The position numbers and the translations under genes were made by a program. From Asterias rubens (taxonomy: Eukaryota), in NCBI RefSeq assembly GCF_902459465.1, contig NC_047066.1, positions 21,204,001-21,268,000 of the forward strand: 64,000 bases of DNA. The letters run 5' to 3'. The notes below the pieces were generated by a model. The model was given only the letters and a program-made list of their open reading frames with translations. It searched no databases and was not told the origin of the DNA. Position 1 is the first letter of the stretch. Each line of letters starts with the position of its first letter. This document shows positions 10,774 through 63,685 of the stretch, in pieces.

Positions 10774-13700
10774 ATGAGACAGTTTTGCTTCGGTTTGTTC
10801 CTGTATCTGCTAGTATGCACACTTCCAACGGGTAAGTAGGCAAATCTGCAATAAAAGTAAAGAATTCTCACTTAAATAAATAAATAATACACAATATGTA
10901 TCTTTCGTGAACGAAAAGCATTGGGGGGGGGGGACTTTAATATTTTACAATTTTGTTTAATCAATTACAGTCCTTAATATGTAAAACACTGAAATTCGTT
11001 TTGTTATTTTTACCGGAAAAAGATAGATTTGAACTTAAACGGCGATTCGAGAAAGACACAATCTGTATTTACTAGTCTAAAATTAAGTTTAAAAATAAAT
11101 ACAAATATATTTCACAAATCCTTTGAGGCATTAATTAACTCAAGTTCACCAGCCATGTGCAAACAATAATCAATTGTGACCCGCTCTGTGAAAATGAGTC
11201 AGATATAGGCAATTACAGGAATTGAGTTAAATGCATGGCTGGAAAGAACACATCGGCAGCAGTAATTTTTTTTTTTTTTAAGCTTTGGGGTTATCGCGTT
11301 GCGGAGTTACTCGCGTTTGAAATTAGCCACTACACCATTTTTATGAAAAACTAATTACAAGTAAAATGATATTTTAAACTACCATTGTGTGCTAAAGGAT
11401 ACAAATAAGACATAAAATAGACATAAGTATGATTGTTGTATTCATAGCTTTATTGCCTAAAAGTAAGTGTTCTAAAGGTAACCCATGCAACTTAAGATCT
11501 TAAAAAGAAAAGGGAAAAAAAACATTTTCCACATTAAACTGTCCATAACTTAATATTGCATTGGGCGACATGTGACTCATTTCACAGAGTGGGTCACAAT
11601 TAATATTCACGTCAATACATAGGCCCTGTCCATGGAATTCTAACGCGAAAAGTTTGATCTCTCTTTCGTTTTGAAAAAATAACTGTCCGTCAACATTCGT
11701 TAAAAAAAATCAAAAATACATAAACAGATTAATTAAAAAAATTAAAATTTAAAAAGAGCCAATTCGGCGAAAATCGGGCAGTGCAAGTTTAATGAAAAGT
11801 GTATTTAATTATTGATTTATTTCTTTTATTTACCCAGGGTGAGCCAAATCAGTAAAAATAACTGGTTCCCATTCGGGCCCTGCACAATAATTGTTAAGAA
11901 CAAACAAATATAATTTACATTATCAAAAAGTAAACATAAAATCACATTATAAAATTACAATATAAAAGTTGTAAACGTTTTTGTAGTTTTCAAAATGTAT
12001 GTGTGCTTGGATCGAGTGCTTTTATAAATGAATATGCAATGCTTTCTGTGTACATTTTTAATATTTTATCTTAAGATCACTTCTAGATGAGAGATCAGTG
12101 AGTTTTTCTTACAGAATGGATTTCCCAGGATAAACAAGAAATAAATAAATAAATAAAATCAACTCCTCGACAATAATTTGAGTGTACCTTAGAATTAAAT
12201 TTGAAAAACGAACAACGAAAGGAGTTATCTCTAAACAATAAACTGTGGTAGTAATGTTGGAAGCGCTTTGAGGTAGACATGGTTGATGAAGTGCTACATA
12301 AACCCGAGTATTATTGTTATATAAGCCTCAAGAGAAAACAATACTGGTACCGTTAGGTTTCACTACACTGTTTGTTATCGCATACGTTTTATTGTTCTTA
12401 ATTTATTCAACCTCTTCATCGTCCTTGTTTGTCGGTAATAAAAATATCACTCAAGGTTACATGAATCGCGTGAGCATTGGAGACGTTTCCAATTTTGTAT
12501 TTCACTATTCTGAAATCAAGTTGCCAAAGGAATAAAATAAAAAATACCACTTAAGTAACACGAATCGTGCGTGCATTGGAGACGTTTGCAATTTTGTGTT
12601 TCACTAATCTGAAATGAAGTTTTAAAAAAAAATTAAAAAAACTATTACAAATACATTAATATTTCACTTAATCATTTCATGAACTTAATTTAACTAACTC
12701 TAGCTCATCAGCCATGTATAAACAGTATTCAATTACACATTACATAGGCCTATGTTTTGTGCCCTCTCTATGGAATAATATTGCGCACATTATTTTGTGT
12801 CTGTCTTTCGTTTTGAAAAATTAATGTCCGTCAACATTCGTTAAAGAAATGAAAAATACACATAATAGGTTAATATCCAGACTTCTGAAGAAAATTGTTA
12901 AAAACTTTTACAAACAAAATTATAATATCTAACTTTATTTATAGGAACTATATAACGTTATTCACTTAATTTGTTTATTTTCAAAGGCACCGAGTCGAAG
13001 AAGAGCAACCGGTCAGCCCTTTTAGATAATCTGTTGGATGAGTACGGCCCAACATCTCTAAGACCGGTTCACAATTACTCCACGAAAGTCACCATACACT
13101 TCCGTCTCCTGATTACCCAAGTCATCGAGCTGGTATAGTTCCTTAAGATATTTTAATATTAATATCAGTTAAATGCAGTGGACACTATTGGTAATTACTC
13201 AAAATAATTATTAGCATAAAACCTTTCTTGGTGACAAGTAATGGGGAGAGGTTGGTGGTATAAAACATTGTGAGAAACAGCTCCCTCTGAAGTGCCATAG
13301 TTTTCGAGAAAGAAGTAATTTTCCACGAATTTGATTTCGAGACCTCAAGTTTAGAACTTGAGGTCTCGAAATCAACCATCTAAACGCACACAACTTCGTG
13401 TGACAAGGGTGTTTTCTTGTTTCATTATTATCTCGCAACTTTGATGACCGATTGAGCTCAAATTTTCACAGGTTTGTTATTTTATACACATGTTGAGATA
13501 CACCAACTGTGAAGGCTAGTCTTTGACAATTACCAATAGTGTCCACTGCCTTTAAATAAATAATAATAACTGTGTTTTTAAAGCGCCAAATTGCCAAAGG
13601 ATACAAGGCGCTGAAGAAAGAGGGGGAAGGGACAGAACAAAGACAAAAACGACCAGCTATGCCGAAGGAAAAGAGTGGGTTTTTAGAGCATGTTTGAAGG

Positions 13701-16700
13701 TTGCGACACTGTTGGGAGAAAGGCATAATAAGTTTTCACGGTCAATTTTAGCAAAATTCAGTCAATAATTTAACATCTGGTTCATCAAAATGTGCTTGAA
13801 ATTTGATACTCCTGCATTAGCATGCAACAGTTTAAAAGATAGTAATTGTAGCATTCAGTGATCAAATAAAGATGGTTCAAACCAATAAAATAAAAGAAAC
13901 TGGATGATAAGTGGGAAATCAAGAAAGTAAGTTGAGAGTTTTTAATGTGAAGGTGCAGGACCAATAGTTTGCTTTCACCTAATCGCTCGTTTTTTATGTG
14001 TTCTTTGCAGAATGAAAAAGATCAAACAATACAGATTAGCGGATGGCTTGGACAGGTAGGTATACACTTTGACGGGTGCGACTCCGGTGTAGTTAAGCCA
14101 TAAAAAAGATCGCTGCAAAAACTGGGATGCTTAGATGTTGTTCAGTGGGTTTCAGTTCATTTCCATTGCGGTTTATTATGTAGTTTTCTGAATAATTAAT
14201 CTAGTTTATTTCCAGTAGTTTATTTATGATTGTGTGTTATTAATTGTTTTTCCTCCATAGTAGGACCAATAAAATTAATTGAATTGAATTGAATTTAGTT
14301 GAAAACTGACACCATGGACGTAGACAACGAAAAGAGACTCAAAATAAACACATAGGTGTTATAATATATTATGAAAACATCACTGAACACGTCACTGAAA
14401 ACATAACACCAATGCAATTGTGTTGACAGAAATTAGTCTTTAACATGTTATGGTGTCAATTTAGATTTAGTTACTAAGTATCATTATGTGACAACACCTG
14501 TGCCTCAATTGTAACACCCCATTTGTGGTAGACTTGTGTACACGTTGTTAATCATGGTCCCACGCGGTGAGATAGTCGAGTTGTCACTGCTCTCGCGCGA
14601 ACCAGCAGTTCGCGTGGAGAGCAGCACCGCTGCAACTCGATTATCTCACCGCGTGGGACCATAAACGACTTGTCCACAAGTCTACATTTGTGGCAGTGAT
14701 TTACCAAGGCTGACAAAGGGTGATGAGCAGCGATCGCTTTCCACCTGCATTGTTCAATTTAGATTCATATTATTAATGCAAAAATTGGGTTCTCCAAATG
14801 AACAGCCATCTTGTTTTTTTAAATAGCCTTTGTTTACTATTGTTTGTGGCACCTAATTGTCTATTTTGATTGATCACGTCCATCACCTTTGGCATTTTGG
14901 GGTGGATTTGTTGAAGTCTGAACAAAAAGGTGTCGTATAACTCCACATCAAAAGAAGAACAAACATAATGACGACTTATCAAGAAGTCAGGCAAAGTCTT
15001 GGCATGCCCAAATGCGGTCACATTATTGGTCAATCGAAATAATCTCTTTAAATCTTTTGTTGATTGACTGTTTGTTTGTCTGTCTGTTTGTTATTTTTAT
15101 ATCTTATGATTTAATTCCAGATTTGGGAGGATGAGTTCCTGGCTTGGAATCCTGCTGAACATAATAATGTGACAAGATTGTTTGTTCACACTTCCAAAAT
15201 GTGGGTGCCAGATATCACGCTGTATAAAAAGTAAGTCACTCCGACTCTTCCTCTGTACACAGTCACTGTAGTACAATACGAAAGTGTAAGACCACCAGGG
15301 CTAGTCACTCCCTTCATAGGGTAACCCCATCAGGGTCAAAGCACTGTTCTCAATGGGGCACTGTACGAGAAAAAGCCACACACAGAAGAAGGGAGAACCA
15401 AACATGATCGAACAAATCCCATATAAGCAACAGCAACATATCTATACCACCAGGAACAAAATCAGAGAAAACGAAGCAACAACAAACCCATAAAGTTATT
15501 GGTGGTATAGCGCCACTATGTCTTTCTATAATTTATATAATCTATATATTTATGCAAGTAACGTGTCTTTTTGTGTAAGAAAAACTCCCAGGTACCTTTA
15601 GTTAATAGATCGGGCTGCAAATTTTCGTACGACTTTTTTTTCGGTCCGGTGATTATACTACAGGGGTTCAATTTTTTTTTTTATTCGTATTTCAAAACTT
15701 GATTATTTCACATACCTTTTTTGAAAGAAGATGAACGAATGCAAGGTATGAAAACACTGCTGTTGATTTACGAAAACGTGCCAACGAAACCTTCTATCAT
15801 TTTCTCTAGTGTGGACATAAACTTCGAGAGTTACAAGGATATCAACGCCAAAGTGAGCTACACTGGTTTGGTCGACTGGAGTACACCAGTTATCCTCAAA
15901 TGCACTTGCAACATCGACGCTCGACTGTATCCGTTCGACGTCCAGGTTTGCGAGTTGAAGTTCAGCGCATGGGCGTATGACGGTGCCGAAGTAGATCTCG
16001 TTCAAATCGAAGGACCGGTTTCTACGCAGAACCAGTTCCGTGATGACAGTGTGTGGGAACTCATCAAGGTGGATGTGGTTCGCAGAGAGGTGCTTTATCC
16101 TTGCTGTACCACCCCCTTTCCTGATCTTGGGTACTTCATTCATCTCCGGAGACGGTCTCTTTTCCACGTCTTGAACATCATTATACCATGCCTGCTGCTG
16201 TCTGTCCTGAACCTGATGGTGTTTGTTCTGCCCCCCGAGTCGGGTGAGAAGATTCAGCTCGGGATGACCAACTTGCTAGCTCTTGTGCTCTTCCAGCAGC
16301 TCATCACTGACAACCTGCCACCAACGTCCGCAGACAAATCTCCTATAATAAGTAAGTACGAATTTCCAACCATTGCTCATCTTGCATTATCACTTTTACC
16401 TTTCCGTGCCGGTGTCCCAGGGAAATCTCTGTCCGCCGGGGATTCTGTCCCCGTATGGAAAATCAACGATGGGCGAAGTGAGGACGAGTCAAAAGAGGGC
16501 GCTATCAAAATAAGTTTGTACACGGTTTGCCGTATAACGCACATAATCTCTGGGGGGACAGAAACCTCTGCCACACCGCTACCGTATCCGCCAATTCCGC
16601 GTCGTGCAAGAGCGGTTCACTACTAAAAAATGACAACACAAGAATGCATACAGCAATATCAGCTTTTTGTGATTTTGCGAAGGCTGGTGCGCCGATCATC

Positions 16701-17439
16701 AGTCTTGATTTTGCGCACCGTGCCGTATTGACAGTCCCATCACTATGATACAGTATAAACATTTGAGTAGAAGCTCATCATCCCATCCCAAGCGGTCTAG
16801 GAAGAAACTGGTCACGGGGGCCGAGCAAAACATAATTCTTTTGTAAAAAAAGGTTGCTGTCACTGTATTCTGTATTTTCCTAACCAATAACTTCACATTT
16901 TTTTGTCTGCAGCTTTCTACTTTACTCCAATGATTGTCCTTGCTTGCACTTCAATCATATGCACTGTGCTAGTACTCAAGCTGTTCTACCACAACGACCG
17001 ACGCCCAGTGCCACGCTGGCTTCATCACACCACTTCCAAGCTTTCTCGTGCCGTTCTCTACAAGCTAAAATCCCGCCGTTTTAATGAACTGCCTTTCGGT
17101 GTGGACCCTGGAGCAGCAGAGCAGCGGTTACCACGAGAGTCTGGTGATGAGTCCGAAGGTAGTGACGATGTCATCGAGACAAGCAACGGCAATAAAACAC
17201 GCTGTCGTGCCTGTACGGCTCAGCACTCCCGTAAAGACGGGCCTTTGGGTAACGATACAGCCGTAGACATCAAAGTAAACGGGAGCCTGCCAGGTCTTAA
17301 GGATAAGGGGACACATGGGGACAGTGACCTAGATTGGAAGGATGTAGCCTTGGTTATTGACCGGGTCGCACTTGCCTTGTCAGTCACTGTCACGATATCC
17401 TCACTTATCCTTACTGTTGTTCTCTTCCTTTTGGGATAA
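10774..17439 (+). CDS. CHRNA9/10-like: nAChR-like Cys-loop receptor gene 1, alpha-type, ~475 aa. Exons 10774-10831, 12987-13132, 14011-14055, 15121-15230, 15810-16351, 16913-17439.
   Basis: Signal peptide MRQFCFGLFLYLLVCTLPTG; loop D ISGWLGQ; loop A WVPDITLYKN; Cys-loop CNIDARLYPFDVQVC; loop B FSAWAYDG; loop C YPCCTTPF; M1-M4 present. All introns are GT-AG and the exons total 1428 nt in frame. Q15' in M2 and an intron at the end of the M2-M3 linker resemble alpha9/alpha10. Confidence 0.9.
11172..11601. mobile_element. MITE family C (~430 bp, ~28-bp TIR AATTGTGACCCGCTCTGTGAAAATGAGTC), gene 1 intron 1
   Basis: The right end GACTCATTTCACAGAGTGGGTCACAATT is the reverse complement of the left end. 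Superfamily not determined. Confidence 0.7.
13169..13555. mobile_element. MITE family A (~385 bp, TTAA-flanked, TIR AGGCAGTGGACACTATTGGTAATT; Kolobok/piggyBac-like)
   Basis: TIRs and TTAA flanks seen; at least 7 copies in the window. Confidence 0.85.
14529..14684. mobile_element. Fold-back MITE with a 9-bp TSD (CATTTGTGG), Mutator-like, in gene 1 intron 3
   Basis: The element is almost wholly palindromic (TAGACTTGTG...ATGGTCCCACGCGGTGAGATA / TATCTCACCGCGTGGGACCAT...CACAAGTCTA). The direct repeat is at 14520-14528 and 14685-14693. Confidence 0.8.
16438..16568. repeat. Small inverted-repeat element in gene 1 intron 5
   Basis: GGATTCTGTCCCC ... GGGGACAGAAACC (imperfect). The gene 2 copy is perfect. 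Confidence 0.5.
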
Positions 17440-18170
17440 CAAAATAAAAACAAACTAAAAAAAAAAGACCCGGGTTCCAAATCCCAGGGGCCTTGACCAC
17501 ATTATGGATCAGGTTGACACAGACAGTGGGTTAAAATTGGATTCAACTCAGATCCCATCCGTGGGCACGGATCAGGGTCAGGATCCGGAAGATTTTATAG
17601 CGTGACAAACCAAGTTATCTCGTGTACAAAAAGAGTAAACCTAAATGCGAAGACACTGTCGCAAAACTCAAATTGACCCGGTTTGCGGGTGGGGCTTGAT
17701 CAATTTCTTTAAGCTGACCAAAACAAGTGGTAGATATTGAGATTTTGACTGATATTTTACCGGTTTGACACAGTTTCGGGTCAGTTTGACATAGATTCCG
17801 GGTCAAAACATTACCAAAGCATGTTTTTATGTTTTCTTTTCCCTATTTTCTTTTTCGGGGATGAGACGAACAATAAAGTTTTAAACTATTCTCTTACAAA
17901 AATTTAAGGAAACATTAATTATCCTCGAAAATAATATTCTGTGTGATAATGTATCTTGCGAGCATGGGCAAACTATTATACTGATATTGTATAACCTTTG
18001 AGTATCTTTTGCACTGTAAAATGTATACAATAAACTTCAAGACGATATTTATATTATTTTTAGTTAATAATACAAATTACTGTAAATATATTTTACAAAG
18101 ATTAATGTTCAGGTATTTATTTGTTGCAGCACCCGCTGCTGCTAAAATAAAGGATTCGAACTGACTCTAG

Positions 18171-18310
18171 CTACCGGGCAATCTCAGTGGTCTAGTTGGT
18201 ATGACACTGCTCTAGAATTGCAAAGGTTGTGTGTTCGAACTCCACCCACAGAACTCGGGATTACAGTGCTTACACACCTCGGTGTTTATGGGTAAAACCA
18301 AAATTATATT
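18171..18310 (+). mobile_element. tRNA-derived SINE, internally deleted
   Basis: A-box-like TGGTCTAGTTGG and B-box-like GTTCGAACTCC, then CACAGAACTCGG...GGGTAAAACCAAAATTA. Homologues at ~27299-27425 (+), ~45468-45620 (-) and ~7165-7290 (-). Confidence 0.65.
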
Positions 18311-19293
18311 TATTATTATTGGAAAGGCTTTATGGTGTAACTTTCTGAGTCAAATTAATTTATAACGGATGTTGTAATTATTACCATACTAAGTATTGCT
18401 TTCTATCGTGAAAGAAGAAAAAACGGTATAATTTTTTTAAATTGATATGTCATCCAATAACATTAAATGATTTTTTTTTATTAAAGCTATAATCAACGCC
18501 GATTGTTGACATGAACATAATAATAAACAACGTCTTCCAAGTGCGGAAATCAATCAGTTGACAAACTTCTCCTTTCTTTTTGCGTTGACATCAACACATT
18601 TTTTGTTTGCCTATTTCCACCGAGACAACCTTTTAGGATTTAAATGATAACACTAATTACTTTTAGGACGATAGAAAAACAAATGCACCTGATCAAACTC
18701 ACTACAGACCTTGTGCACCGACGTCATTCCCCCACCCTCTTGGAAGTAAAACAATGATTAAACATTGGACAGTGCATATAATACGCGCAGGTCACGGGAT
18801 GGGCCAATGAGCAATGGTTATTTTGACCTCTATAGATAGTTGCAACCTATAGATTCCATACCTTCCACCCAGGTAGTAGTTAACCAGCAGGACAGTTCTT
18901 TTCAGAAATGAAGTCTCAAAAAAACACCCCTAAAAATCTACTCTGCGGTAGCGCAGAAGTCTCCCGAATTCCGAAAAATCGACTCTACGGTAGTAGAATT
19001 TAAAGCAAGGCAAGTTCTCAAAAGAACACAATCTAACAGCACACATTACCGCTAACCAAAATTTGATACTTAACGATGCAATGCCTCAAAACCAAAAGCT
19101 TTATGGTTGTGATACTAGGCTAAAAGTGTATGTAGCGCCCTCTCTCGAAACCCTACAAACAAGTATGGTGTGGCAATAAAGGAATCAGAGGCAACTGTGA
19201 TGTATATTGGAACAGATCAGGCTTGATACGATGCCACAAATTAATCTGGAGACAAATTGTGAAAGACAACATAGGCATAAAGTCTAACGTGTA

Positions 19294-19359
19294 ATGATGG
19301 TGCGTTGTGCGAGTAATTACACCTTACACTGCATGCACAACACTGGCTATTATTCATGA
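19294..19359 (+). pseudogene. Truncated copy of gene 3 exon 1 (MMVRCASNYT then unrelated LHCMHNTGYYS*)
   Basis: Identical to 30246-30276 up to ACACCT, then diverges. The hydrophobic core and the donor site are absent. Confidence 0.75.
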
Positions 19360-20054
19360 GCCAACCGCTACGCAGCCTCTGATTGGCTCCACCGGAAAGT
19401 CGGGGGAGATTTGCCGAAAAACAACAAAAAAGTTAAGACCCGTCGTTGCAAATATCCAAGACCATGGTGAGATCTAAATCAGAGAAACAGAGCGCCCGCT
19501 AGCGTTCGTTCATTACAAGCGTGTACAGTTTTTGCCGTGCATAGATCGGAACGTTGGTTGTGTGTGACCACGCAACACCAATGGTCTTGGAACCAAGACT
19601 AATGGAATTCCGAAAACAAAAAAAAATTCTTGAAGGCAAACAATATGAGCTGGTAGGTATTAAAGTACGGTAAACCTTTCACGTCACAAAGTACTTAAAC
19701 CGCACGTCTAGGTGACAATCATTACAGCGTTTTGTATGTATGAGTGGGTACTTGGAACTCGGCATTCGGCATATAAGCCTGCAAGCAAGCGCTTCTTTCA
19801 CAGGCCACACGTCATCCGTTGGAGACTGCAAATGCTGACTTTTGCTTTATTTAGTGATGTACTTTCAATGTTTTAAACAAGCAAAATCCAAGTTTGAATC
19901 AAGTCCTGATATTGAACATTCGTTGATCGTGACGAGTTTTCATGTGAGACTTTAAGACAACAGTGAACGTGAAAACTTACCATTGGAGAAGCTTGCATCT
20001 TGCTCGATCTATTGTTGCTGTGATGAATCTTTACTCACAATTATTGAAAGCATA

Positions 20055-23000
20055 ATGAGACAGTTTTGCTTCGGTTTGTTCCTGTATCTGCTAGTATGCA
20101 CACTTCCAACGGGTAAGTAGGCAAATCTGCAATAAAAGTAAAGAATTCTCACTTAAATAAATAAATAATACACAATATGTATCTTTCGTGAACGAAAAGC
20201 ATTGGGGGGGGGGACTTTAATATTTTACAATTTTGTTTAATCAATTACAGTCCTTAATATGTAAAACACTGAAATTCGTTTTGTTATTTTTACCGGAAAA
20301 AGATAGATTTGAACTTAAACGGCGATTCGAGAAAGACACAATCTGTATTTACTAGTCTAAAATTAAGTTTAAAAATAAATACAAATATATCTCACAAATC
20401 CTTTGAGGCATTAATTAACTCAAGTTCACCAGCCATGTGCAAACAATATTCAATTGTGACCCGCTCTGTGAAAATGAGTCAGATATAGGCAATTTCAGGA
20501 ATTGAGTTAAATGCATGGCTGGAAAGAACACATCGGCAGCAGTAATTTGGTATGTGTCTAAGCTTTGGGGTTATCGCGTTGCTGAGTTACACGCGTTTGA
20601 AATTAGCCACTACACCATTTTTTTGAAAAACTACCATATTTTAAACTACCATTGTGTGATAAAGGATACAAATTAGACATAAGTATGATCACACAATTGT
20701 TGTATTCATAGCTTTATTGCCTAAAAGTAAGTGTTTTAAAGGTTACCCATGCAACTTAAGATCTTAAAAAGAAAAGGGAAAAAAACATTTTCCACATTAA
20801 ACTGTCCATAACTTAATATTGCATTGGGCGACATGTGACTCATTTCACAGAGTGGGTCACAATTAATATTCACGTCAATACATAGGCCCTGTCCATGGAA
20901 TTCTAACGCGAAAAGTTTGGTCTCTCTTTCGTTTTGAAAAAATAACTGTCCGTCAACATTCGTTAAAAAAAAATCAAAAATACATAAACAGATTAATTAA
21001 AAAAATTAAATTTAAAAAGAACCAATTCGGCGAAAATCGGGCAGTGCAAGTTTAATGAAAAGTGTATTTAATTATTGATTTATTTGCGGTTTTAATTGGG
21101 AAATCTTTGTAGCACCATAGCTCAAGAAGTAAACTGCCGTTTTTTAGACTGTTTGTAGTTAAAGACTCCTTGGGGATTGGAGATTAATTTTGAAAAACCG
21201 TGACCCCATGTCGACCTCTACTTCCGGGTCAACCGGAAGTGGCACCATAACTCATTCAGCATTTTCTTCTTTTTTTCAATGACAGACATCTTGGTAATTT
21301 TAGCTCATAATCCAAGCAAAAGAACACGGAACAGCTTTGTGTTTGTTCACAAACACCTAATGTCTAGTTATTGTTATTTTAGGCCGTTATAAGCCTCAAG
21401 AGAAAACAATACTGGTACCGTTAGGTTTCACTACACTGTTTGTTATCGCATACGTTTTATTGTTCTTAGGTTATTCAACCTCTTCATCGTCCTTGTTTGT
21501 CGGTAATAAAAATATCACTCAAGGTTACATGAATCGCGTGAGCATTGGAGACGTTTCCAATTTTGTATTTCACTATTCTGAAATCAAGTTGCCAAAGGAG
21601 TAAAATAAAAAATACCACTTAAGTAACACGAATCGTGCGTGCATTGGAGACGTTTGCAATTTCACTATTCTGAAATGAAGTTAAAAAAATAAGTAATAAA
21701 TAAACAAAAAAATAAACTATTACAAATACATTAATATTTCACTTAATCATTTCGTGAACTTAATTTAACTAACTCTAGCTCATCAGCCATGTATAAACAG
21801 TATTCAATTACACATTACATAGACCTATGTTTTGTGTGCCCTGTCTATGGAATAATATTGCGCACATTATTTTGTGTCTGTCTTTCGTTTTGAAATGAAA
21901 AATACACATAATAGGTTAATATCCAGACTTCTGAAGAAAATTGTTAAAAACTTTACAAACAAAATTATAATATCTATCTTTATTTAAAGGAACTATATAG
22001 GCCTAACGTTATTCACTTAATTTGTTTATTTTCAAAGGCACCGAGTCGAAGAAGAGCAACCGGTCAGCCCTCTTAGATAATCTGTTGGATGAGTACGGCC
22101 CACCATCTCTAAGACCTGTTCACAATTACTCCACGAAAGTCACCATACACTTCCGTCTCCTGATTACCCAAGTCATCGAGCTGGTATAGTTCCTTAAGAT
22201 ATTTTAATATTAATATCAGTTATTAAATGCAGTGGACACTATTGGTAATTACTTAAAATAATTATTAGCATAAAACCTTTCTTGGTGACAAGTAATGGGG
22301 AGAGGTTGGTGGTATAAAACATTGTGAGAAACAGCTCCCTCTGAAGTGCCATAGTTTTCGAGAAAGAAGTAATTTTCCACGAATTTGATTTCGAGACCTC
22401 AAGTTTAGAACTTGAGGTCTCGAAATCAACCATCTAAACGCACACAACTTCGTGTGACAAGGGTGTTTTCTTGTTTCATTATTATCTCGCAACTTTGATG
22501 ACCGATTGAGCTCAAATTTTCACAGGTTTGTTATTTTATACACATGTTGAGATACACCAACTGTGAAGGCTAGTCTTTGACAATTACCAATAGTGTCCAC
22601 TGCCTTTAAATAAATAATAATAACTGTGTTTGTAAAGCGCCAAATTGCCAAAGGATACAAGGCGCTGAAGAAAGAGGGGAAAGGGACAGAACAAAGACAA
22701 AAACGACCAGCTATGCCGAAGGAAAAGAGTGGGTTTTTAGAGCATGTTTGAAGGTTGCGACACTGTTGGGAGAAAGGCATAATAAGTTTTCACGGTCAAT
22801 TTTAGCAAAATTCAGTCAATAATTTAACATCTGGTTCATCAAAATGTGCTTGAAATTTGATACTCCTTCATTAGCATGCAACAGTTTAAAAGATAGTAAT
22901 TGTAGCATTCAGTGATCAAATAAAGATGGTTCAAACCAATAAAATAAAAGAAACTGGATGATAAGTAGGAAATCAAGAAAGTAAGTTGAGAGTTTTTAAT

Positions 23001-26000
23001 GTGAAGGTGCAGGACCAATAGTTTGCTTTCACCTAATCGCTCGTTTTTTTATGTGTTCTTTGCAGAATGAAAAAGATCAAACAATACAGATTAGCGGATG
23101 GCTTGGACAGGTAGGTATACACTTTGACGGGTGCGACTCCGGTGTAGTTAAGCCATAAAAAAGATCACTGCAAAAACTGGGATGCTTAGATGTTGTTCAG
23201 TGGGTTTCAGTTTATTTCCATTGCGGTTTATTATGTAGTTTTCTGAATAATTAATCTAGTTTATTTCCAGTAGTTTATTTATGATTGTGTGTTATTAATT
23301 GTTTTTCCTCCATAGTAGGACCAATAAAATTAATTGAATTGAATTGAATTTAGTTGAAAACTGACACCATGGACGTAGACAACGAAAAGAGACTCAAAAT
23401 AAACACATAGGTGTTATAATATATTATGAAAACATCACTGAACACGTCACTGAAAACATAACACCAATGCAATTGTGTTGACAGAAATTAGTCTTTAACA
23501 TGTTATGGTGTCAATTAAGATTTTCTACTAAGTATCATTATGTGACAACACCTGTGCCTCAATTGTAACACCCCATTTGTGGTAGACTTGTGGACAAGTT
23601 GTTAATCATGGTCCCACGCGGTGAGATAGTCGAGTTGTCACTGCTCTCGCGCGAACTGTTGTTCGCGCAACCAGCAGTTCGCGTGGAGAGCAGCACCGCT
23701 GCAACTCGATTATCTCACCGCGTGGGACCATAAACGACTTGTCCACAAGTCTACATTTGTGGCAGTGATTTACCAAGGCTGACAAAGGGTGATGAGCAAT
23801 GATCGCTTTCCACCTGCATTGTTCAATTTAGATTCATATTATTAATGCAAAAATTGGGTTCTCCAAATGAACAGCCATCTTGTTCTTTTAAATAGCCTTT
23901 GTTTACTATTGTTTGTGGCACCTAATTGTCTATTTTGATTGATTACGTCCATCACCTTTGGCATTTTGGGGTGAATTTGTTGAAGTCTGAACAAAAAGGT
24001 GTCGTATAACTCCACATCAAAAGAAGAACAAATATAATGACGACTTATCAAGAAGTCAGGTAAAGTCTTGGCATGCCCAAATGCGGTCACATTATTGGTC
24101 AATCGAAATAATCTCTTTAAATCTTTTGTTGATTGACTGTTTGTTTGTCTGTCTGTTTGTTATTTTTTATATCTTATGATTTAATTCCAGGTATGGGAGG
24201 ATGAGTTCCTGACTTGGAATCCTGCTGAACATAATAATGTGACAAGATTGTTTGTTCACACTTCCAAAATGTGGGTGCCAGATACCACGCTGTATACAAA
24301 GTAAGTCACTCCGACTCTTCCTCTGTACACAGTCACTGTAGTACAATACGAAAGTGTAAGACCACCAGGGCTAGTCACTCCCTTCATAGGGTAACCCCAT
24401 CAGGGTCAAAGCACTGTTCTCAATGGGGCACTGTACGAGAAAAAGCCACACACAGAAGAAGAGAGAACCAAACATGATCGAACAAATCCCATATAAGCAA
24501 CAGCAACATATCTATACCACCAGGAACAAAATCAGAGAAAACGAAGCAACAACAAACCCATAAAGTTATTGGTGGTATAGCGCCACTATGTCTTTCTATA
24601 ATTTATATAATCTATATATTTATGCAAGTAACGTGTCTTTTTGTGTAAGAAAAACTCCCAGGTACCTTTAGTTAATAGATCGGGCTGCAAATTTTCGTAC
24701 GACTTTTTTTTTCGGTCCGGTGATTATACTACAGGGGTTAATTTTTTTTAATTTTATTCGTATTTCAAAACTTGATTATTTCACATACCTTTTTTGAAAG
24801 AAGATGAACGAGTGCAAGGTATGAAAACACTGCTGTTGATTTACGAAAACGTACCAACGAAACCTCCTATCATTTTTTCTAGTGTGGACATAAACTTCGA
24901 GAGTTACAAGGATATCAACGCCAAAGTGAGCTACACTGGTTTGGTCGACTGGAATACACCAGTTATCCTCAAATGCACTTGCAACATCGACGCTCGACTG
25001 TATCCGTTCGACGTCCAGGTTTGCGAGTTGAAGTTCAGCGCATGGGCGTATGACGGTGCCGAAATAGATATCGTTCAAATCGTAGGACCGGTTTCTACGC
25101 AGAACCAGTTCCGCGATGACAGTGTGTGGGAACTCGTCAAGGTGGATGTGGTTCGCAGAGAGGTGCTTTATGCTTGCTGTACCATCCCCTTTCCTGATCT
25201 TGGGTACTTCATTCATCTCCGGAGACGGTCTCTTTTCCACGTCTTGAACATCATTATACCATGCCTGCTGCTGTCTGTCCTGAACCTGATGGTGTTTGTT
25301 CTGCCCCCCGAGTCGGGTGAGAAGATTCAGCTCGGGATGACCAACTTGCTAGCTCTTGTGCTCTTCCAGCAGCTCATCACTGACAACCTGCCACCAACGT
25401 CCGCAGACAAATCTCCTATAATAAGTAAGTACGAATTTCCAACCATTCCTCATCTTGCATTATCACTTTTACCTTTCCGTGCCGGTGTCCCAGGGAAATC
25501 TCTGTCAACCGAGGATTCTGTCCCCGTATGGAAAATCAACGATGGGCGAAATGAGGACGAGTCAAAAGAGGGCGCTATCAAAATAAGTTTGTACACGGTT
25601 TGCAGTATAACGCACATAATCTCTGGGGGGACAGAATCCTCTGCCACACCGCTACCGTATCCGCCAATTCAGACACGGCCCGACTCCCAAGAGCGGCAGA
25701 ATGTTGGTACGGAGGTGTGTTCCGCGTCGTGCAAGAGCGGTTCACTACTAAAAAATGACAACACAAGAATGCATACAGCAATATCAGCATTTTGTGATTT
25801 TGCGAAGGCTGGTGCGCCGATCATCAGTCTTGATTTTGCGCACCGTGCCGTATTGACAGTCCCATCACTATGATACAGTATAAACATTTGAGTAGAAGCT
25901 CATCATCCCATCCCAAGCGGTCTAGGAAGAAACTGGTCACGGGGGCCGAGCAAAACATAATTCTTTTGTAAAAAAGGTTGCTGTCACTGTATTCTGTATT

Positions 26001-26561: not shown

Positions 26562-27298
26562 CAAAATAAAAACAAAATCTCTAAAAGAAGACCCGGGTTC
26601 CAAATCCCAGGGGCCTTGACCACATTATGGATCAGGTTGACCAAGACAGTGGGTTAAAATTGGATTCAACTCAGATCCCATCCGTTGCCATGGATCAGGG
26701 TCAGGATCCGGACGTTTTTTAGAGCGTAACAAACTAAGTTATCTCGTGTACAAAATGAGTAAACCTAAATGCGAACAAGACACTGTCGCAAAACTCAAAT
26801 TGACCCGGTTTGCCGGTGGGGCTTGATCAATTTCTTTAATCTGACCAAGAAGAGTGGTAGATATTGTGATTTTGACTGATGTTTTGCCGGTTTGACACAG
26901 TTTCGGGTCAGTTTGACATAGGTTCCGGGTCAAAACATTACCAAAGCATGCTTTTATGTTTCCTTCTATGATGGCATTATAGTTTACATATATTTTGTCG
27001 TTGATGAGGAACAGCGAAGTTGTAAACTATTCTCTTAAAAAAATGTAAGCATTTTTATCCTGGAAAATAATTTGCTGTGTGATAATGTATCTTGTGAGCA
27101 TGGGCAAACTATACTGATATTTTATAACATTTGGGTATGTTTTGCACTAAGAAAGTGTAAAATAACTTCAAGACGATATTTATATTGTTTTTATTTAATA
27201 ATAAAAAATTACCGTAATATATTTTACAAAGATTAATGTTCAAGTATTTATTTGTTGTAGTACCCGCTGTTAAAATAAAGGATTCAAACTGCCTCCAT

Positions 27299-27425: not shown

Positions 27426-27509
27426 ATGTATTATTATTGGAAAGGCTTTATGGTGTAACTTGCTGAGTCGAATTATTTTATAACGGATGTTGAAATCATT
27501 ACCGTATAA

Positions 27510-29223: not shown

Positions 29224-29225
<2 letters not shown>

Positions 29226-56103: not shown

Positions 56104-59100
56104 TTAAAGTGTCTCCAGATTATAACCATTAACTCGAATGATAAAACATACAATAGTGATAACCATAGCGATGACGGTGACCAATGCACATAGCATTAAA
56201 GCTGCACGATCAATCACCAAAGCAACATCCCGCCACAGTAAAACATTCTGACTACTTGGCAAGTCACCACTCTGATGCCGTCGATCCTGCATGGACTCCA
56301 CCTCTGCACTTGGTTGCAATTTAGCTTTAGCTCTTGCCACGGGTGCGTTGACGATCTTCGATCGGGTCACGGATGCGTAGAGACTACCCTGGGATGTATT
56401 GATGGTTTCCGATTGGACAAGGCGGTTTTCTCCCCAACCAGCCACCCGGCAATAACTCACTCTTGACGGCGTTAACTCTGTGTCAGTGCCGGTCAAATTT
56501 CCGGGATTTGTTTCCCCGAGACTAACGGTATCAGGATTGCTGAAACTCCCATCACGTTTCCCCGTGTTTTGGGGTTGCTCTGGAGTTTTCTCCCAAGCTT
56601 GGTACCGCACCAACTTAGAAATAACTTTGAGTACAAGCCACTTCATCCAACGGGGTATGGGGCGCCTGTTGTCGCGATAATACAAATTCAGAACTGTCAC
56701 GGTGCACACAATGGAGAAACACGACAGGGCAATCATTGGAGTAAAATAGTATCCTGAAATAAACAAAAATATTACCGACATTAAACACCAATGATTGTAG
56801 AACATTTTCAGGTAAAAGTTCTAAAACATTTACGACAATTTGATAACAAAGTCCTTCGAACTCCCGTGATATTCAAATTAAAACAGAGTTGACTTTGACC
56901 CTTTGACCATCAACAAACTGAGTTAAAATTGAGTTGAACTTATATATTTATAAGGAATCCTTTGTTGGAAAATCAGTCCATCACAAAACTAAATTCGAAC
57001 TCCAGCCCCCTCTTTAAAAACAACTCAAGATAACTTACCAATGATTGGTGTGTTGTCCGATGTGGGCGGCACCGAATTACTGATGAGTTGCTGGAACAGA
57101 ACCAACGACAATAAGTTTGTCATACCCAGTGATATCTTCTCCCCCGACTCAGGGGGCAAGACAAACACCATGAGATTCAGAAGAGACAACAGCACACATG
57201 GCAAGACGATCTCAAGCAAGTAAAACAGCGGCCTTCTACGTAGATGAATGGAGTACGATAACTCCGGGAAGCTAAGACCACCGATTGTGGAATCCTTCGC
57301 GGTGATTGTAACTTTTAGAAGCTCCCATACCCCGATGTCTGAGTAGAAAGTCTGATTAGCATGGTTCTTCATTTTGGTGAAGTTCATTTCCGTAGCACTG
57401 TAAACCCACGAGGTGAACTTTAGTGTGCAGACCTGGGTATCGAAGGGGAAGAGGCGTGCATCGATACGGCAGGAGCTTTTCAGGATTGCCGGTGTGCTCC
57501 AATAAACAAATCCATCACTATAGACGAGAACTGGAATGTCTTTATAGCTTTCGAAGTCTCTATGCACACTGTAATCCAAAAGGGAAAGTAAAACAAAATC
57601 GATTAGCATTATTAAAATAAATGTCTTGTAGCAATTTCATGGTTCGGGCATCAGTCAACATTTCGTAATGCTCTTAGTATTAACCCTATTACACCGACAT
57701 TGCAATCTATAAGATTTGGTTTCCGTCCAACCGCGCAACGCATGGTTTACCAAACATTAATGCAACGTTAAAACCCACTTTGAAACAGTCAAAGGTAATA
57801 TCTATATACTTTGCACGATTTGGGGCAGAGGGTACTCCATGAATTTCCAAATATAATATTTTCCTCTTGTACGGAAGTACACCCCTTAAAACCTCAAAAG
57901 AAGTCCTGTGATTCCAGGCATGCAATGGAAACACAATGTGGTACACCATAAACAATAGAACTTTATCATGGTGCGGCCATCTTGATTTTCTCCCATTCAA
58001 ATCAATGTAACCAAACCGAGGCTGAAAGGAGAATCGGTCTGGTTCTTTTTAATACAATGAATTGTATGATGTTGTTGGAGACAGGGAACATGACCAAGAT
58101 GGTGTCAGCATGATAAAGGTCTGTATCGAGCACCAAATGGTGATGGAAATTGTGTCCCTACCCTTTATACAGTGTAGTATCGGGGAGCCAAATTTGTGAT
58201 CTGTGCACGTATAAATAATCCACGTCATTGTGTTCTGTAGGATCCCATTGCATGAACTCGTCCGTCCAACTCTAAAACAAAAGGGGAAAACACCACAATA
58301 AGAATTCTGAATTGAAGTTGATTCTACAAAATCTCAATGAAGAGTGCGAGAGACTACTTTTATTTCTAAGGGATTTATTTCAAACAATTTAAGAAATGTA
58401 TAGTTACCTGTGACAACCAGGCTGATATTTCAATTGTTTGGTGGCGCTCGCTCTGAGTTAAAGAAAACAACAAATAGCTTGTCAATCAACAAGAAAACAC
58501 ATCATTTCTAGCTAGTATAACATTACATTTAATTTCCCATGCAGAAGTTTAACTCCCAATGTTGATTGATTTATAAGTGGCAGAAAACCGATCGAACAGT
58601 TTTGTTGAACAACAAACTAGTTTACATTACTTGCTAACGCCCCTTCTTCTGTAACTTTTCGTTACGCCCCTATTTCGGGAACACGGCTAATTCTTATGTG
58701 ATGAGAACTGCAACGAATGTTTTCACCAATTCTATAACTTGTACAATGAGTATAAGCTGAAGCTGCAATGAGGCTCTTACCAATTCTATAACTTGCGCAA
58801 GGAATATAGCTGGAACTACAAAAAAAAGAGTTCTTACCAATTCTATAACTTGTGCAAGGAGTAGCTGAAACTGAACCGTAGTAGTCTCATACATGTCATA
58901 GACCGGGCGAGTAGATGGGTATCCATAGTTATCAAGTAGTTCTTTCAGTAAGACGTTCTGAGCACTCATCGGGTGGAGACATCCTGAAAGGAAATGTGAC
59001 CAAACATTACTTCGTGGGTTTAAAGAAAGCAATACAATATATAATCTCATAACCGTGGGGAAAATTCAAATGTCAAAATCAACATCCCATTTTGTTTACT

Positions 59101-59403
59101 TGTTCTGAAACCAGCAGCTGTTGACTTACTTTGTATTTTACTTAAACCATGTTGTCTTAATCTAAGAGTGACACATCCAAACTCAGAAATTAATAAATTC
59201 ATCACCATATTTTACGGTTTTAAAATAATTGAAGAACCATAATGCATCTGCATTTAACCGGAGAATGCATAATGTCCATTTTTATTTTCTTAAATAATTA
59301 TAAAGCAACCATATGTAGATAAAAAAAAATTGGAAAAGTTCTTACCGCTCTCTTGGAACACTGACGGAAATATCAGGAGCACAACCCACTTCGCCAAATC
59401 CAT
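56104..59403 (-). CDS. nAChR-like Cys-loop receptor gene 5, non-alpha (no loop-C CC), ~512 aa. Exons 59403-59346, 58983-58838, 58452-58408, 58271-58162, 57568-57039, 56753-56104.
   Basis: Signal MDLAKWVVLLIFPSVFQESG; ISAWLSQ; [10 protein letters not shown]; [15 protein letters not shown]; FTSWVYSA; loop C AKDSTIGGLSFPEL; M1-M4 present; exons total 1539 nt in frame. Confidence 0.9.
58727..58890 (-). repeat. Three tandem copies (57- and 54-nt spacing) of the 3' end of gene 5 exon 2 including its splice donor
   Basis: CAAGTTATAGAATTG|gt occurs three times, at boundaries 58838, 58781 and 58727. Confidence 0.85.
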
Positions 59404-60246
59404 TTCGGTGCACAATCTGTATTCTCAAAGTACACAGATCCGTAAGTTGCAGTTCCTTAACTTGTCGATTGATGCGCGGTCTAACAGCTTTCAAACGGCA
59501 ATGAATGTATCATGTGCAATTATGCCGATTAAATGATGACGCTATTTTAATTTACGTTTTTCATGGACACTGATTGAATAAGATGGTTAATGGGTATGAT
59601 ATCATGCAGTGTATAGCCAAATGACCCGTAGACTCCATCTCAATACCTTTTATGTTCGTTTATTGAATTCATTATTCATTATACTTCTAAATGATAGATA
59701 CACGGTTTTAATGGAAGAGGAGGCTTATTTAAGTCATTCGGCTCGGACTTTAGATTCGGAACAATCTGTTGACAATTAATTACACCATGATACAATTATT
59801 ATGCAATATGCCTATCTAAATTTGAGTTTCGTTATTACCGATCGTTTGTTGTTAATTACATTTCTTTGTCGAGGCCATTCGAACTTCGCCAGTGAGGAGA
59901 ACTAACTTTTAATATTTCCTATTAACACATATATAACATATCTACTATAAGTTTTTATTTATTCTCCACTACCAAATCCCAAAAATAACCGCCTGGTATT
60001 CACCAAGCGGCAGCCAACAGGCTTACCAAGCAGCCGCTTCCCCCACTCATTCAAGGCCCGTCCGTTAGCCTAGCTATAAAAGCTGTAAACTGTACGATGA
60101 AGTCTACTTAACAAACAGCATCTTTAAACCTGATCAGGTGCTCAGGGTTCGATTGAAAGTACTAGGATTCACAGATGATCTGTCAGTATTGTCATAGTTA
60201 CTTGTATTTTATTGTTTCATGTTGACAATGACAATTAAACGTACAA

Positions 60247-60389
60247 GGGGAGACTTTTGGGACGCTTGGTGGCAGCAGACCTACCAGGTAAAATCCATTG
60301 TTCTCGGTCATGTGCGCACGCTCAGAACTACGCAAACAATGGAAATTTACCTGGTAAGTCTGCTGCCACCTAGCGTCCCAAAGTCTCCC
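60247..60389. mobile_element. ~143-bp fold-back MITE (family E) between gene 6 and gene 5, with partial copies near 50818-50906 and 62915-62980
   Basis: GGGAGACTTTTGGGACGCTTGGTGGCAGCAGACCTACCAGGTAAA pairs with TTTACCTGGTAAGTCTGCTGCCACCTAGCGTCCCAAAGTCTCCC. Confidence 0.7.
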
Positions 60390-60619
60390 ATTGGAACAAA
60401 TAATAATGAGTATAATTGTGAAAACATAGATGCCACATAAATCAACATAAAATTTATAGAAATTTTAAAGATAATATCGAGTGAATTCAGTTAATTCTTT
60501 AACTCTGGATTGGTAATGATTCAACGGTTTTTTAGTTTACTATGCATTCCCCTAACAATTTAGTCCAGTATCGGCCTATCTTTTAGGAACATATTTGAAG
60601 GAGATCACATTGTTGTCTA

Positions 60620-63600
60620 TCAACCATGTTTAATATGCAGGATGTAACTTGAGGCAGTTACACCAATTGATCCCAGTGTAACCAGAGTGCTGATGAATAA
60701 GGCTGTACGGTCTATCACCAGAGCAACATCTTTCCAGACGTAGCCCTTGAAAGCACGATCACGGCCTTCTCGTTCCGATGGGTGATCTTCAGCGTGGCCC
60801 TTGGTTCTTTCGACGGGGGAGCTGGACGTTTTTGACCGGTTGGTCGATGCATAATCTCGCCTCGGTGCAATTTGAAGAGTGTCGGGCTGAAAATGATGGT
60901 TCTCTACCCAGTCATCCACCCGGTAAAGATGAATATCTGACGGCAGCAAGTCACGATGGCTGATAGTCTCGGGCCCGGAGTCCAGACGGCCGTTGTGTGG
61001 ACATCTTTCGTCGACTGGTTCTTCATCGAGAGTTTCTTCGGGAGCTGGGTATCTTACTAACTTACCGAGAACTCTGAATGTGAGGTACTTTATCGAGCGA
61101 GGTATGGGACGCCGGTTATCCCGATAATAAATGTTGAGGACGACTACGGTGATGATGATGGAGAAACATGACAGGGCGATCATACACGTGAAGTAATACC
61201 CTATAGGGGGAAAAGACAATAACATTCGCTGAAACATGCACGATTATATTGGGTTATTCATTATTTGTACACGAGTGTCTTTGTTGAGAAAGAAGCGGTA
61301 TATTTTATTGAAAGGAACTTCAAACAAAGTTTCCACCATAAACTACATATTGGCGAATACTCAAAATAATATCAATGACCATAAAACCTTGCTCGGTTAG
61401 AAGCACTGCAGCCGTTGGTAGTATACACTATTTCGGGATTGGATTCCCCTCAAAGGGGTATGATTTGGTTAACCCTTCATCCAAAAACCATTTGATTATA
61501 AGAAACATTCATGCATGAATCATTTTATCAGATTTCTGAGGGTGGTGTACGTTCGCTATGCCTCTGCCAGAGGTGCGGTTGATATTCGCCGTCATTTTGC
61601 TAAATGTGGGTAGATTAGACTTTCCTTTGAAAAAGCTTAAACTTTTAAATGCGTTTTATTGCACGTGCCGTTATACTTTTGTTTTTAAATAGGCATAATT
61701 TTAAGTTGATAAAAAGGGGTAAAGTAGTGGGGCATATTTACCAATTATTGGAGTGTTTTCTGACGTTGGAGGCAAAAATGACCCAATTAGCTGCTGAAAG
61801 AGAATCAGCGACAACAGGTTAGTCACACCCAGTGATATCTTCTCCCCTGACTCCGGAGGCATTAGAAACACCATGAGATTTAGAAGAGAGAGCAGAACAC
61901 ACGGGATGAAAATATGGAGCAAGAAATAGAGAGGTTTTCTTCTCAGATGAATAAGGTAGGATAGCTCAGGGTAGGCTATAGATTCCCCATAGGCATTCGA
62001 TTCTCGGGTTACCTCTACGTTGAGTAGCTCCCAAACCCCAACATTAGCGTAGGTGGAAGTTAAAGGTAGTCGTTCAGACTGTGTGAGATTAAGCTGATTG
62101 GCACCGTAGGCCCATGATGTAAACCTGAATTCGCAGGACTGGGTATCGAATGGGAACATTCTGGCGTTGATTTTACAAGAGGTCTTCAGTGTAGACGGTG
62201 AAGACCATTCCACGTGTCCACTATTTTGTACAATCAATGGGATGCCCTTGTAACTGTCAAACGGTTTGTCAACGCTGTAATTGTAGGCATAAAATAATGC
62301 AATTTAGTATCAGTTTAACAAACATCTAACAAGTTAAATAATTTTGATTTAAAAGGTTTCTCTGTGCTGCGAAAAACTTTAACCACATGTTGGTAAGCAA
62401 TTTGATCAAAATTTCGACTTACTTTTTGTAAAGAGTAGTATCTGGCAGCCATATTTTAGACTTGTCGACGTAAAGAACATCAATGCCGTTGTAATCATTT
62501 GGATCCCAAGTTAAATACTCGTCCACCCATATCTGAAAATGTAGATAAAATCAACCGGATATAATTAATAAAAACGAACTAGTTTTTTTCAGTTGAACAG
62601 AGCACTGATCAAAATTTCATGCTGATCGTTAAAATAGTCATCCGTTTTTACAACAGCCACCAGAACTCGAACAAGACTATTTTGTAATTACCTTGAATTA
62701 CATTGCCACAAACGATTCTCCAAATATAACACCAAGATCAAATATTTAAGTTTTGACGGCCAACTTCACGAAAATAAATTAAGTTTCATTCAGTTTCATT
62801 CAGTTTCATTCAAATGCAGGCATGCTTCCCTACATTCAAACTAGGGTTCCTTTGTAGTCACTTCCCGAGTGACAGGCGGGTACCCATTTCTCGTCTGGAT
62901 AACTACCTTTAAGCATCACTTTAACCAGGAACAATGGATTCACCTGGTAAGTATGCTGCCACCAGGCTTCCTGAAAGTCCATTATTTCGTTTTCGTGCGC
63001 AAATATACAAGCTACATTTTCGCAATTCTCAAGTTGAATGTGTACAGCCAATTAATGACAGCGATGCAATTGAAAAGTTGACCAGCCTCTTGCTGTTTGT
63101 TTTTGCGAAATTATACGATAATATTATATTAAGTTACAAATAAAAAGGTAACTACTGGAATAAATCAATTTATTTGCCAATGACTAAATACTGATTGTTA
63201 AAGGTTCTAAAACTATAAAACTGTACCTGGCTTAACCAAACTCCCATTTCCAAGGTCTGATATCGCTCACTCTGTAAGGAAAAAGAAAAAGTATGGAATC
63301 AAATCACGAGTTTCATTAAGGATAAAACAGTGTAAGGTCCTTTAAAGTTATAATTAGAATGATTTAGTCGCCAGTGATTAAAACAAATCCACCAGAATTT
63401 GAAGTATTGGCCACACACCATAACAAGCTTTTGTTCTTCACACACAACACAGTAAAACACTATACTTTATAATCAGTTCAACAACAATATACCTAAAACT
63501 ACAATTATATCTAACATGAAAAATTTCCATTACAATCATTACCAATTCTATGACTTGGCGGATTACCAGACTAAATACCACTGTTGTTACATCCGATACG

Positions 63601-63685
63601 TTATATACGGGTCGGGTTGATTGGAAACCGTAGCCACCAAGTAGCTCCTTCAGAAGTACATTCTGGGCACTCATCTGACGACATT
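60620..63685 (-). CDS. nAChR-like Cys-loop receptor gene 6, non-alpha (no loop-C CC), 5'-partial. Exons 63685-63543, 63271-63227, 62532-62423, 62274-61742, 61200-60620. The signal-peptide exon probably lies beyond 64000.
   Basis: ECRQMSAQNVLLKELLGGYGFQSTRPV; MGVWLSQ; [10 protein letters not shown]; CKINARMFPFDTQSC; FTSWAYGA; loop C RESNAYGESIAYPEL; M1-M4 present; GT-AG introns in frame. Confidence 0.88.

Follow-up and report, generated by a model that had tools for sequence, protein, structure and literature searches.

A tandem cluster of nicotinic receptor-type genes in Asterias rubens

We analysed a 64,000-nucleotide stretch of the genome of the starfish Asterias rubens (LR699096.1:21204001-21268000, assembly GCA_902459465.3; hereafter the window), which has a G+C content of 38%, a single N gap of 213 bases at 9723-9935, and a cluster of genes encoding Cys-loop receptor subunits of the nicotinic acetylcholine receptor (nAChR) type. 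Cys-loop exons were located by motif scans and single-exon tblastn searches, their boundaries were read in three frames, and spliced models were assembled (Table 1). This approach recovered six sets of five coding exons, and exon 1 of genes 1 to 5 (g1 to g5) was picked as a signal-peptide-like ATG exon with a phase-1 donor. An earlier note on this DNA had described six intact Cys-loop genes from a probable echinoderm, lying between positions 10774 and 63685. The six genes are confirmed, the first of these positions is the ATG of g1 and the second is the first base of g6 exon 2, and the models match proteins of A. rubens; however, exon 1 of g6 (at ~64060-64147) lies ~60-150 bases beyond the end of the window, and the array as a whole comprises nine genes.

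The Pfam domains Neur_chan_LBD and Neur_chan_memb match the large exons of g1, g3, g4, g5, and g6, which form long open reading frames (ORFs) on both strands. Exon translations matched PF02931 with E-values of 1e-22 to 1e-25, together with matches to PF02932, and the full proteins carry both domains. They have the layout of the Cys-loop superfamily, with an extracellular domain that binds the ligand and, after it, a membrane domain of four helices (M1 to M4), and the two Cys-loop cysteines, 13 residues apart, are kept in all nine starfish genes when these are aligned to alpha7.

All six genes in the window follow one six-exon plan with matching phases and GT-AG at every intron, as the earlier note had proposed. 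Exon 1 is short, encodes a signal peptide, and ends in phase 1; exon 2 (143-149 nt) ends after (T/A/R)Q(V/L)IEL; exon 3 has 45 nt; exon 4 (110 nt) ends after W(L/V)PD(T/I)TLY(K/T); exon 5 (530-542 nt) runs from before the Cys-loop via M2 to the start of M3; and exon 6 (524-650 nt) encodes the remainder of M3 as well as the cytoplasmic loop and M4. The motifs previously listed as shared are common to the genes but not identical among them, with variants such as TQLIEL in g3, AQVIEL in g5, RQVIEL in g6, WVPDITLYK in g1, WVPDTTLYT in g2, and GVTNLL and YFTCM in g6. The cysteine pair (CC) of loop C is present in g1 to g4 (YPCC, YACC, YACC, and YTCC, respectively) and absent from g5 and g6, as well as from g7 to g9 outside the window; we refer to the two groups as alpha-type and CC-less. 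Within the window, the four alpha-type genes lie on the + strand and face two CC-less genes on the - strand, in agreement with the first description.

The full array extends over ~75 kb, with g1 to g4 on the + strand and g5 to g9 on the - strand, tail to tail at g4/g5. Beyond the end of the window, in the neighbourhood of P0159 and P0321, lie three further CC-less genes on the same strand as g5 and g6. Their products have 495 aa (g7), 494 aa (g8, from our model), and 468 aa (g9); no additional Cys-loop gene was detected within 10 kb past g9. Pairwise amino acid identity is 94% between g1 and g2, 58-59% among g1/2, g3, and g4, 55% between g5 and g6, and 43-48% across the two groups.

Phylogenetic placement within the nAChR family

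In a search of 1.8 billion representative proteins, the closest relatives of the large exon of g4 were echinoderm and hemichordate proteins. We constructed a maximum-likelihood (ML) phylogeny of 73 nAChR-type proteins, named from their source records. The sampling covered vertebrate alpha7, alpha9, alpha10, beta2, and beta4 and sequences from insects, nematodes, molluscs, brachiopods, tunicates, hemichordates, and cnidarians. A larger FastTree phylogeny of 203 sequences, fragments included, had an unstable deep topology and was used solely to choose proteins to name. In the ML tree the starfish cluster genes formed a single clade (support 99/98) within an echinoderm clade that also contains a separate brittle-star expansion, and this echinoderm clade was in turn nested in an Ambulacraria-only clade of 35 rows (100/97). 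Vertebrate alpha9/alpha10 formed their own clade (100/100) that excludes the starfish genes; they were recovered as sister to the Ambulacraria-only clade, at a support of just 71/71. The starfish genes are not orthologues of any vertebrate subunit.

Membership of the alpha7/ACR-16 group, which is implied by the RefSeq name of g3 and g9, was rejected (approximately unbiased test, p = 0.006; log-likelihood difference 16.4). A support of 99/95 for alpha9/alpha10 with Ambulacraria in a reduced tree was not counted, given that it was only the split from the outgroup. The best sequence matches in the PDB were all nAChR subunits (E 1e-41 to 1e-49), and the bit scores of the g4 extracellular domain were about equal across them (alpha3 171.6, alpha6 164, beta3 152.9, alpha9 150.8, alpha4 147.8, alpha7 ~144), so raw similarity has no preference for alpha9. 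The label "alpha9/alpha10-like" that the genes had been given is therefore acceptable just in the weak sense that these may be the nearest vertebrate relatives. By the same trees, the RefSeq names "alpha-7-like" and "beta-3-like" are misleading, as they imply a vertebrate orthology that the phylogeny does not support, and the automatic name "alpha-9-like" is to be corrected in the same way.

The separate brittle-star expansion is that of Amphiura filiformis, which has multiplied members of the same echinoderm clade on its own (P0017, P0276, P0277, P0281, P0282, and P0286); several of these copies share one 70-Mb chromosome-scale contig.

From a two-gene pair to a nine-gene array

The starfish clade divides into an alpha-type half, in which (g3,(g1,g2)) stands beside (g4,(Patiria P0161, Acanthaster P0162)), and a CC-less half, in which (Patiria P0157, Acanthaster P0006) stands beside the Asterias genes, with g9 joining in a second tree. 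Gene 4 is a one-to-one orthologue of the alpha-type gene of Patiria and Acanthaster in these trees. Patiria miniata and Acanthaster planci each have one alpha-type and one CC-less gene placed tail to tail, compared with nine genes in Asterias; the two members of these valvatid pairs are 2.7-8 kb apart, no other copy was found within 10 kb on either side of the Patiria pair, and the Acanthaster pair lies at a scaffold end. Because Patiria and Acanthaster share them, both the alpha/CC-less split and the convergent layout predate the split between Valvatida and Forcipulatida. The valvatid two-gene pair is presumably the ancestral state of the Asterias array, and the CC-less copies, judging from the trees, multiplied later, in the Asterias lineage. 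In Asterias amurensis there are orthologues of g8 and g9 (94% amino acid identity for g9), and no fewer than three CC-less genes lie in a row. The g1-g3 branch lies outside g4 and its valvatid orthologues and is longer than the g4 branch; either it originated early and was then lost in valvatids, or it has been displaced by faster change.

The support for the asteroid clade bears out the view that the cluster arose by local, lineage-specific expansion from one ancestor. The nine genes go back to an ancestral starfish pair, one alpha-type and one CC-less gene arranged tail to tail, from which local copying in the Asterias lineage produced four alpha-type and five CC-less genes, four and two of which are in the window. 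The cluster is a clean and datable case of a two-gene receptor module, an agonist-binding subunit gene with its partner gene, that became a nine-gene array within one starfish lineage; Patiria and Acanthaster still show how the module was arranged at first.

Genes 1 and 2 stem from a young tandem duplication. Self-BLAST delimited a unit whose two copies are 90-98% identical in DNA and whose right breakpoint is 31 bases into exon 1 of g3. Because the duplication broke inside this exon, a truncated g3 promoter and start codon lie ahead of g2. Positions 18846-19324 are a 93% identical copy of the region upstream of g3 plus 31 bases from the start of exon 1 (ATGATGGTGCGTTGTGCGAGTAATTACACC), ~0.7 kb before exon 1 of g2, which could use this copy as a spare promoter. 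A reverse-transcriptase fragment of a long interspersed nuclear element (LINE) downstream of g2 has no counterpart in the g1 copy and was therefore inserted after the duplication.

Between g1 and g2 we estimated a synonymous divergence (dS) of 0.038 and a nonsynonymous divergence (dN) of 0.028, a ratio of 0.73. There are 12 amino acid changes in the extracellular domain (dN 0.024, dN/dS ~0.8) and 16.5 nonsynonymous changes in the cytoplasmic loop (dN/dS 0.94), compared with zero amino acid changes and one silent change in M1-M3. This pattern fits relaxed or diversifying change outside a constrained channel core, with counts too small to separate the two. Introns 2-5 differ by just 0.6-1.4%, below the coding divergence (15121-16351 compared with 24191-25424), which is suggestive of diversifying change, resting on 12 substitutions.

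Transcription of genes 4 to 6

RNA data show transcription of g4, g5, and g6, with splicing that agrees with the models and with unequal abundance between samples. One RNA data set contains 0.74 of the sampled words of 50079-51665, equal to the exonic share of this interval (73%), which therefore indicates spliced g4 mRNA. Four transcriptome assemblies were aligned with 56290-62289. The depth of g6 is ~150 in run X7, where an RNA joint at that depth skips exactly 61201-61741, the modelled intron; the three remaining runs contain little or no g6 RNA. The 3' untranslated region (UTR) of g6 is covered in run X7 by contigs of depth ~115-150 (59701-60247 and 60366-60925, continuing into the last exon), interrupted by a repeat at ~60250-60365. 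For g5 the depth is 2-3, and the contigs stop exactly at the exon borders 56752/3 and 57568.

Ligand site, pore, and variation among paralogues

To compare individual residues, the starfish proteins were aligned to alpha7, alpha9, alpha10, and beta2. The aromatic box that binds acetylcholine (ACh; Y93 of loop A, W149 of loop B, Y188 and Y195 of loop C, and W55 of loop D) and the CC pair are complete in g3 and g4, and g1 and g2 differ solely by Y195F. The loop D tryptophan of the complementary face is kept in all genes, and the CC-less genes mostly retain both loop C tyrosines despite the absence of the cysteines. Since these ACh-binding parts are kept, the cluster genes look like ordinary transmitter receptors. 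In the pore, a -1' Glu ring is present in all subunits (in the motif SGEK in the six window genes), 6' Thr and 9' Leu are kept, and 20' is Asp or Glu in the alpha-type subunits g1 to g4; these residues mark a cation channel.

Conservation is uneven along the proteins. Paralogues are 65-85% identical in loops A, B, and D, the Cys-loop (76-82%), and M1-M3, and 29-53% identical in loops E, F, and C; identity in the cytoplasmic loop is 20% among alpha-type and 37% among CC-less genes. Vertebrate nAChR paralogues that differ pharmacologically usually show this same distribution of conserved and variable parts.

Function of the cluster genes

Taking these observations together, we consider that the cluster genes probably encode subunits of ACh-gated, heteromeric, cation-selective pentameric channels, where ACh gating, assembly, and physiological role are inferred. 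Several lines of evidence point this way: the Pfam family, the kept box and pore, a distribution of variation like that of ordinary nAChR paralogues, the constraint on M1-M3 between g1 and g2, the spliced RNA of g4 to g6, the tail-to-tail pairing that is also found in Patiria and Acanthaster, and the precedent of Hl-07243 of the sea cucumber Holothuria leucospilota, which 10 uM ACh activates when it is expressed in HEK293 cells (PMC10120082). In such receptors the alpha-type subunits would most likely give the agonist-binding (+) face and the CC-less subunits the complementary (-) face or an accessory position, and differing alpha/CC-less pairings may yield receptors with different agonist sensitivity and different user cells. 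Other observations weigh against this interpretation. The box is altered in g1/g2 (Y195F), in g5, which is without both loop C tyrosines, and in g8 (Y93H); M2 carries polar residues that are unusual there (in the alpha-type subunits 2' Gln, and further 7' Asn and 15'-16' Gln-Gln); dN/dS between g1 and g2 is raised, at ~0.7-0.8 outside the membrane helices; and two sister paralogues in the sea cucumber, Hl-07241 and Hl-07242, gave no response to 1 mM ACh when expressed alone (PMC10120082).

The altered boxes could also mean that the working receptor is made by the ancestral pair alone (g4 with one CC-less gene), and that the extra copies, especially g1/g2, g5, and g8, are redundant or decaying, being adrift, silent, or modulatory without an agonist site of their own. 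The dN/dS between g1 and g2, overall and above all in the cytoplasmic loop, would suit such decay, as would the RNA depth of only 2-3 for g5 and the greater length of the g1-g3 branch compared with that of g4. We regard this explanation as unlikely, since every reading frame and splice site is intact, the M1-M3 region of g1 and g2 has accumulated no amino acid change against one silent change, and g6 is well expressed; moreover, the close A. amurensis orthologues of g8 and g9 show that both genes have been retained since the two species diverged.

The earlier note had raised a possible chemosensory role by analogy with the chemotactile receptors (CRs) of cephalopods. Under this hypothesis the genes would encode receptors of tube feet or epidermis gated by environmental or prey small molecules instead of synaptic ACh, in parallel to the octopus CRs, or, in a milder form that fits the kept box, receptors with a preference for choline, betaines, or another quaternary amine. 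In its favour, the genes expanded in tandem within one lineage, and extracellular variation is greatest in loops C, E, and F, around the ligand site; among the CC-less genes, identity in loops C and F (29-34%) does not exceed that of the cytoplasmic loop (37%). The raised dN/dS of the g1/g2 extracellular domain and the differences in paralogue RNA abundance between samples can be read in the same sense, and betaine receptors do exist in the nAChR family, with ACR-23 among our PDB matches. Variation in loops E and F is, however, also typical of ordinary neuronal paralogues, and nine genes are few beside known chemoreceptor families. The ligand site does not support the analogy, given that the starfish genes keep the cation-pi aromatic box, whereas the CRs rebuilt it as a hydrophobic pocket (bioRxiv 2025.03.03.641191; PMC11526382). 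A chemosensory role thus seems rather improbable and, as judged from these comparisons, finds no support in this analysis; on present evidence, the cluster opens no new sensory receptor class.

A more speculative possibility, which we consider very improbable, is that the Asterias array is a small combinatorial receptor set with a fixed ACh-type box and diversifying loops C, E, and F, in which different alpha/CC-less pairings are tuned to different quaternary amines (choline, or prey and microbial betaines) in peripheral cells, for instance in tube feet. If this were true, nAChRs would have given rise to contact chemoreceptors a second time, independently, and with cation-pi chemistry kept rather than replaced as in octopus. 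Under the interpretation that we prefer, that of ACh-gated channels, the cluster provides echinoderm cholinergic physiology with named candidate subunits.

Comparison with described systems

Our literature search found no paper on this starfish cluster; an expansion of what may be the wider clade has already been published in a study of a sea cucumber (PMC10120082), and the genes checked are already annotated. In that study, H. leucospilota was found to have an expanded "Ambulacraria-specific" nAChR group, Hl-07241 to Hl-07245, which are sequential local duplicates specific to the Cuvierian organ, an effector organ (PNAS 2023, PMC10120082). This is the closest described system, and by analogy it points to cholinergic signalling in effector organs. 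Likened by published description rather than by sequence, the two groups both represent local duplication in an expanded nAChR-like clade restricted to echinoderms and hemichordates. They differ in that they belong to separate echinoderm classes, with independent duplications, and that starfish are without a Cuvierian organ; in addition, the starfish array is built on a conserved convergent alpha/CC-less pair, of which the main text of PMC10120082, as searched, makes no mention.

The vertebrate subunits CHRNA9 and CHRNA10 share with the starfish genes the loop C spacing CC-x-x-P-Y-P-D/E, and RefSeq labels several of the latter "alpha-9-like" or "alpha-10-like". The CC pair is retained by both vertebrate subunits but missing from five of the nine genes in starfish, and M2 of the starfish subunits differs at 7' and at 15'-16'. 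The cephalopod CRs likewise represent a tandem, lineage-specific expansion of nAChR-type subunits, and in both cases the products could form homo- or heteropentamers. The CRs no longer bind ACh, and their orthosteric pocket is hydrophobic and subject to diversifying selection (PMC11526382; bioRxiv 2025.03.03.641191), unlike the starfish genes with their ACh aromatic box, and the two expansions, one in echinoderms and the other in molluscs, are unrelated. Lineage-specific tandem expansions of nAChR genes are also found in other marine invertebrates, the lophotrochozoans, for which non-neuronal roles have been proposed; bivalves have 99-217 nAChR genes, and deuterostomes were placed among the lineages with reduced numbers (PMC6896357). 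The nine starfish genes belong to another phylum and are far fewer.

Gene models and other features of the locus

The coordinates of the models and of the duplication are given in Table 1.

Table 1 Gene models and other features in the window.
Feature	Span	Strand	Exons	Basis and remarks
Gene 1, alpha-type (loop C YPCC), 475 aa	10774..17439	+	10774-10831, 12987-13132, 14011-14055, 15121-15230, 15810-16351, 16913-17439	Spliced model, GT-AG throughout; Pfam LBD + TM
Gene 2, alpha-type, 474 aa	20055..26561	+	20055-20112, 22038-22183, 23066-23110, 24191-24300, 24883-25424, 26038-26561	Young tandem duplicate of gene 1 (94.3% aa identity)
Gene 3, alpha-type, 488 aa	30246..38383	+	30246-30312, 34404-34552, 35131-35175, 35832-35941, 37020-37558, 37827-38383	Model 100% identical to P0164 over 488 aa
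Gene 4, alpha-type, 505 aa	43026..51665	+	43026-43080, 45709-45854, 48320-48364, 49552-49661, 50079-50617, 51043-51665	Model 100% identical to P0163 over 505 aa
Gene 5, CC-less, 512 aa in model	56104..59403	-	59403-59346, 58983-58838, 58452-58408, 58271-58162, 57568-57039, 56753-56104	Identical to P0158 across its 488 aa
Gene 6, CC-less, exons 2-6 in window	60620..63685	-	63685-63543, 63271-63227, 62532-62423, 62274-61742, 61200-60620	Model and RNA joint
Gene 6 3' UTR	59701..60619	-		RNA contigs, run X7
Duplication unit copy 1, ~9 kb	10329..19324	+		Gene 1, downstream DNA, and truncated gene 3 promoter/exon 1 start; self-BLAST
Duplication unit copy 2	19602..30276	+		Gene 2 through start of gene 3 exon 1; self-BLAST
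LINE reverse-transcriptase fragment	~27510-29209			Downstream of gene 2; Pfam RVT_1; ORFs 27560-28612 and 28498-28941

Public records exist for most of these genes: g2 to g7 and g9 were looked up, and all of them have entries in the NCBI annotation. For g2 this is a 474-aa product that ends at the same base as the stop codon of our model; a suspicion that g1 and g2 were unannotated, raised when homologue searches missed both, was dropped on account of this call. Proteins in ENA that are 92-94% identical to g1/g2 over ~190 aa (the P0002 cluster) look like exon 5 ORFs read into the intron and were not taken as orthologues. P0164, matched by g3, is a RefSeq "alpha-7-like" protein of A. rubens, and P0163, matched by g4, is "alpha-9-like". 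With its exon 1 from outside the window, g6 encodes exactly 499 aa, equal to the length of the public product. Exon 1 of g1 was inferred from a signal-peptide-like ATG and a final G before a GTAAGT donor. The RefSeq protein of g5 (488 aa) begins at a Met within exon 2 and is without a signal peptide, which the inferred exon 1 would add; no RNA covers this exon.

At the end of g5 exon 2 (58727-58852, - strand), the final 15 coding bases (QVIEL) and the donor are present in three tandem copies, 54-57 bases apart, with the donors GTAAGA, GTAAGA, and GTGAAA. The RefSeq protein and our model both use the first, and the two intronic copies could act as cryptic donors. Two short stretches, at ~57950-58125 in intron 4 of g5 and at ~60240-60393 in the 3' UTR of g6, reach a summed contig depth of 10^4-10^5 in all four assemblies; both occur in many variant copies with internal deletions and have no Rfam or tRNA match, and they resemble a short transcribed repeat of very high abundance. 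Scanning the window as a whole for Rfam families and tRNAs likewise gave no matches.

The left neighbour of the array is unrelated to it: a 347-aa ORF at 4160-5203 (- strand) whose product has a calponin-homology domain (Pfam CH, E 3.6e-14) and, after it, a tail rich in Ser, Asp, and Glu. Lastly, a ~390-base repeat is present in copies that are 84-93% identical (13166-13557, 32114-32499, 33983-34362, 43237-43627, and 48400-48787), located on both strands in introns and flanks of g1, g3, and g4, and is probably a dispersed mobile element.

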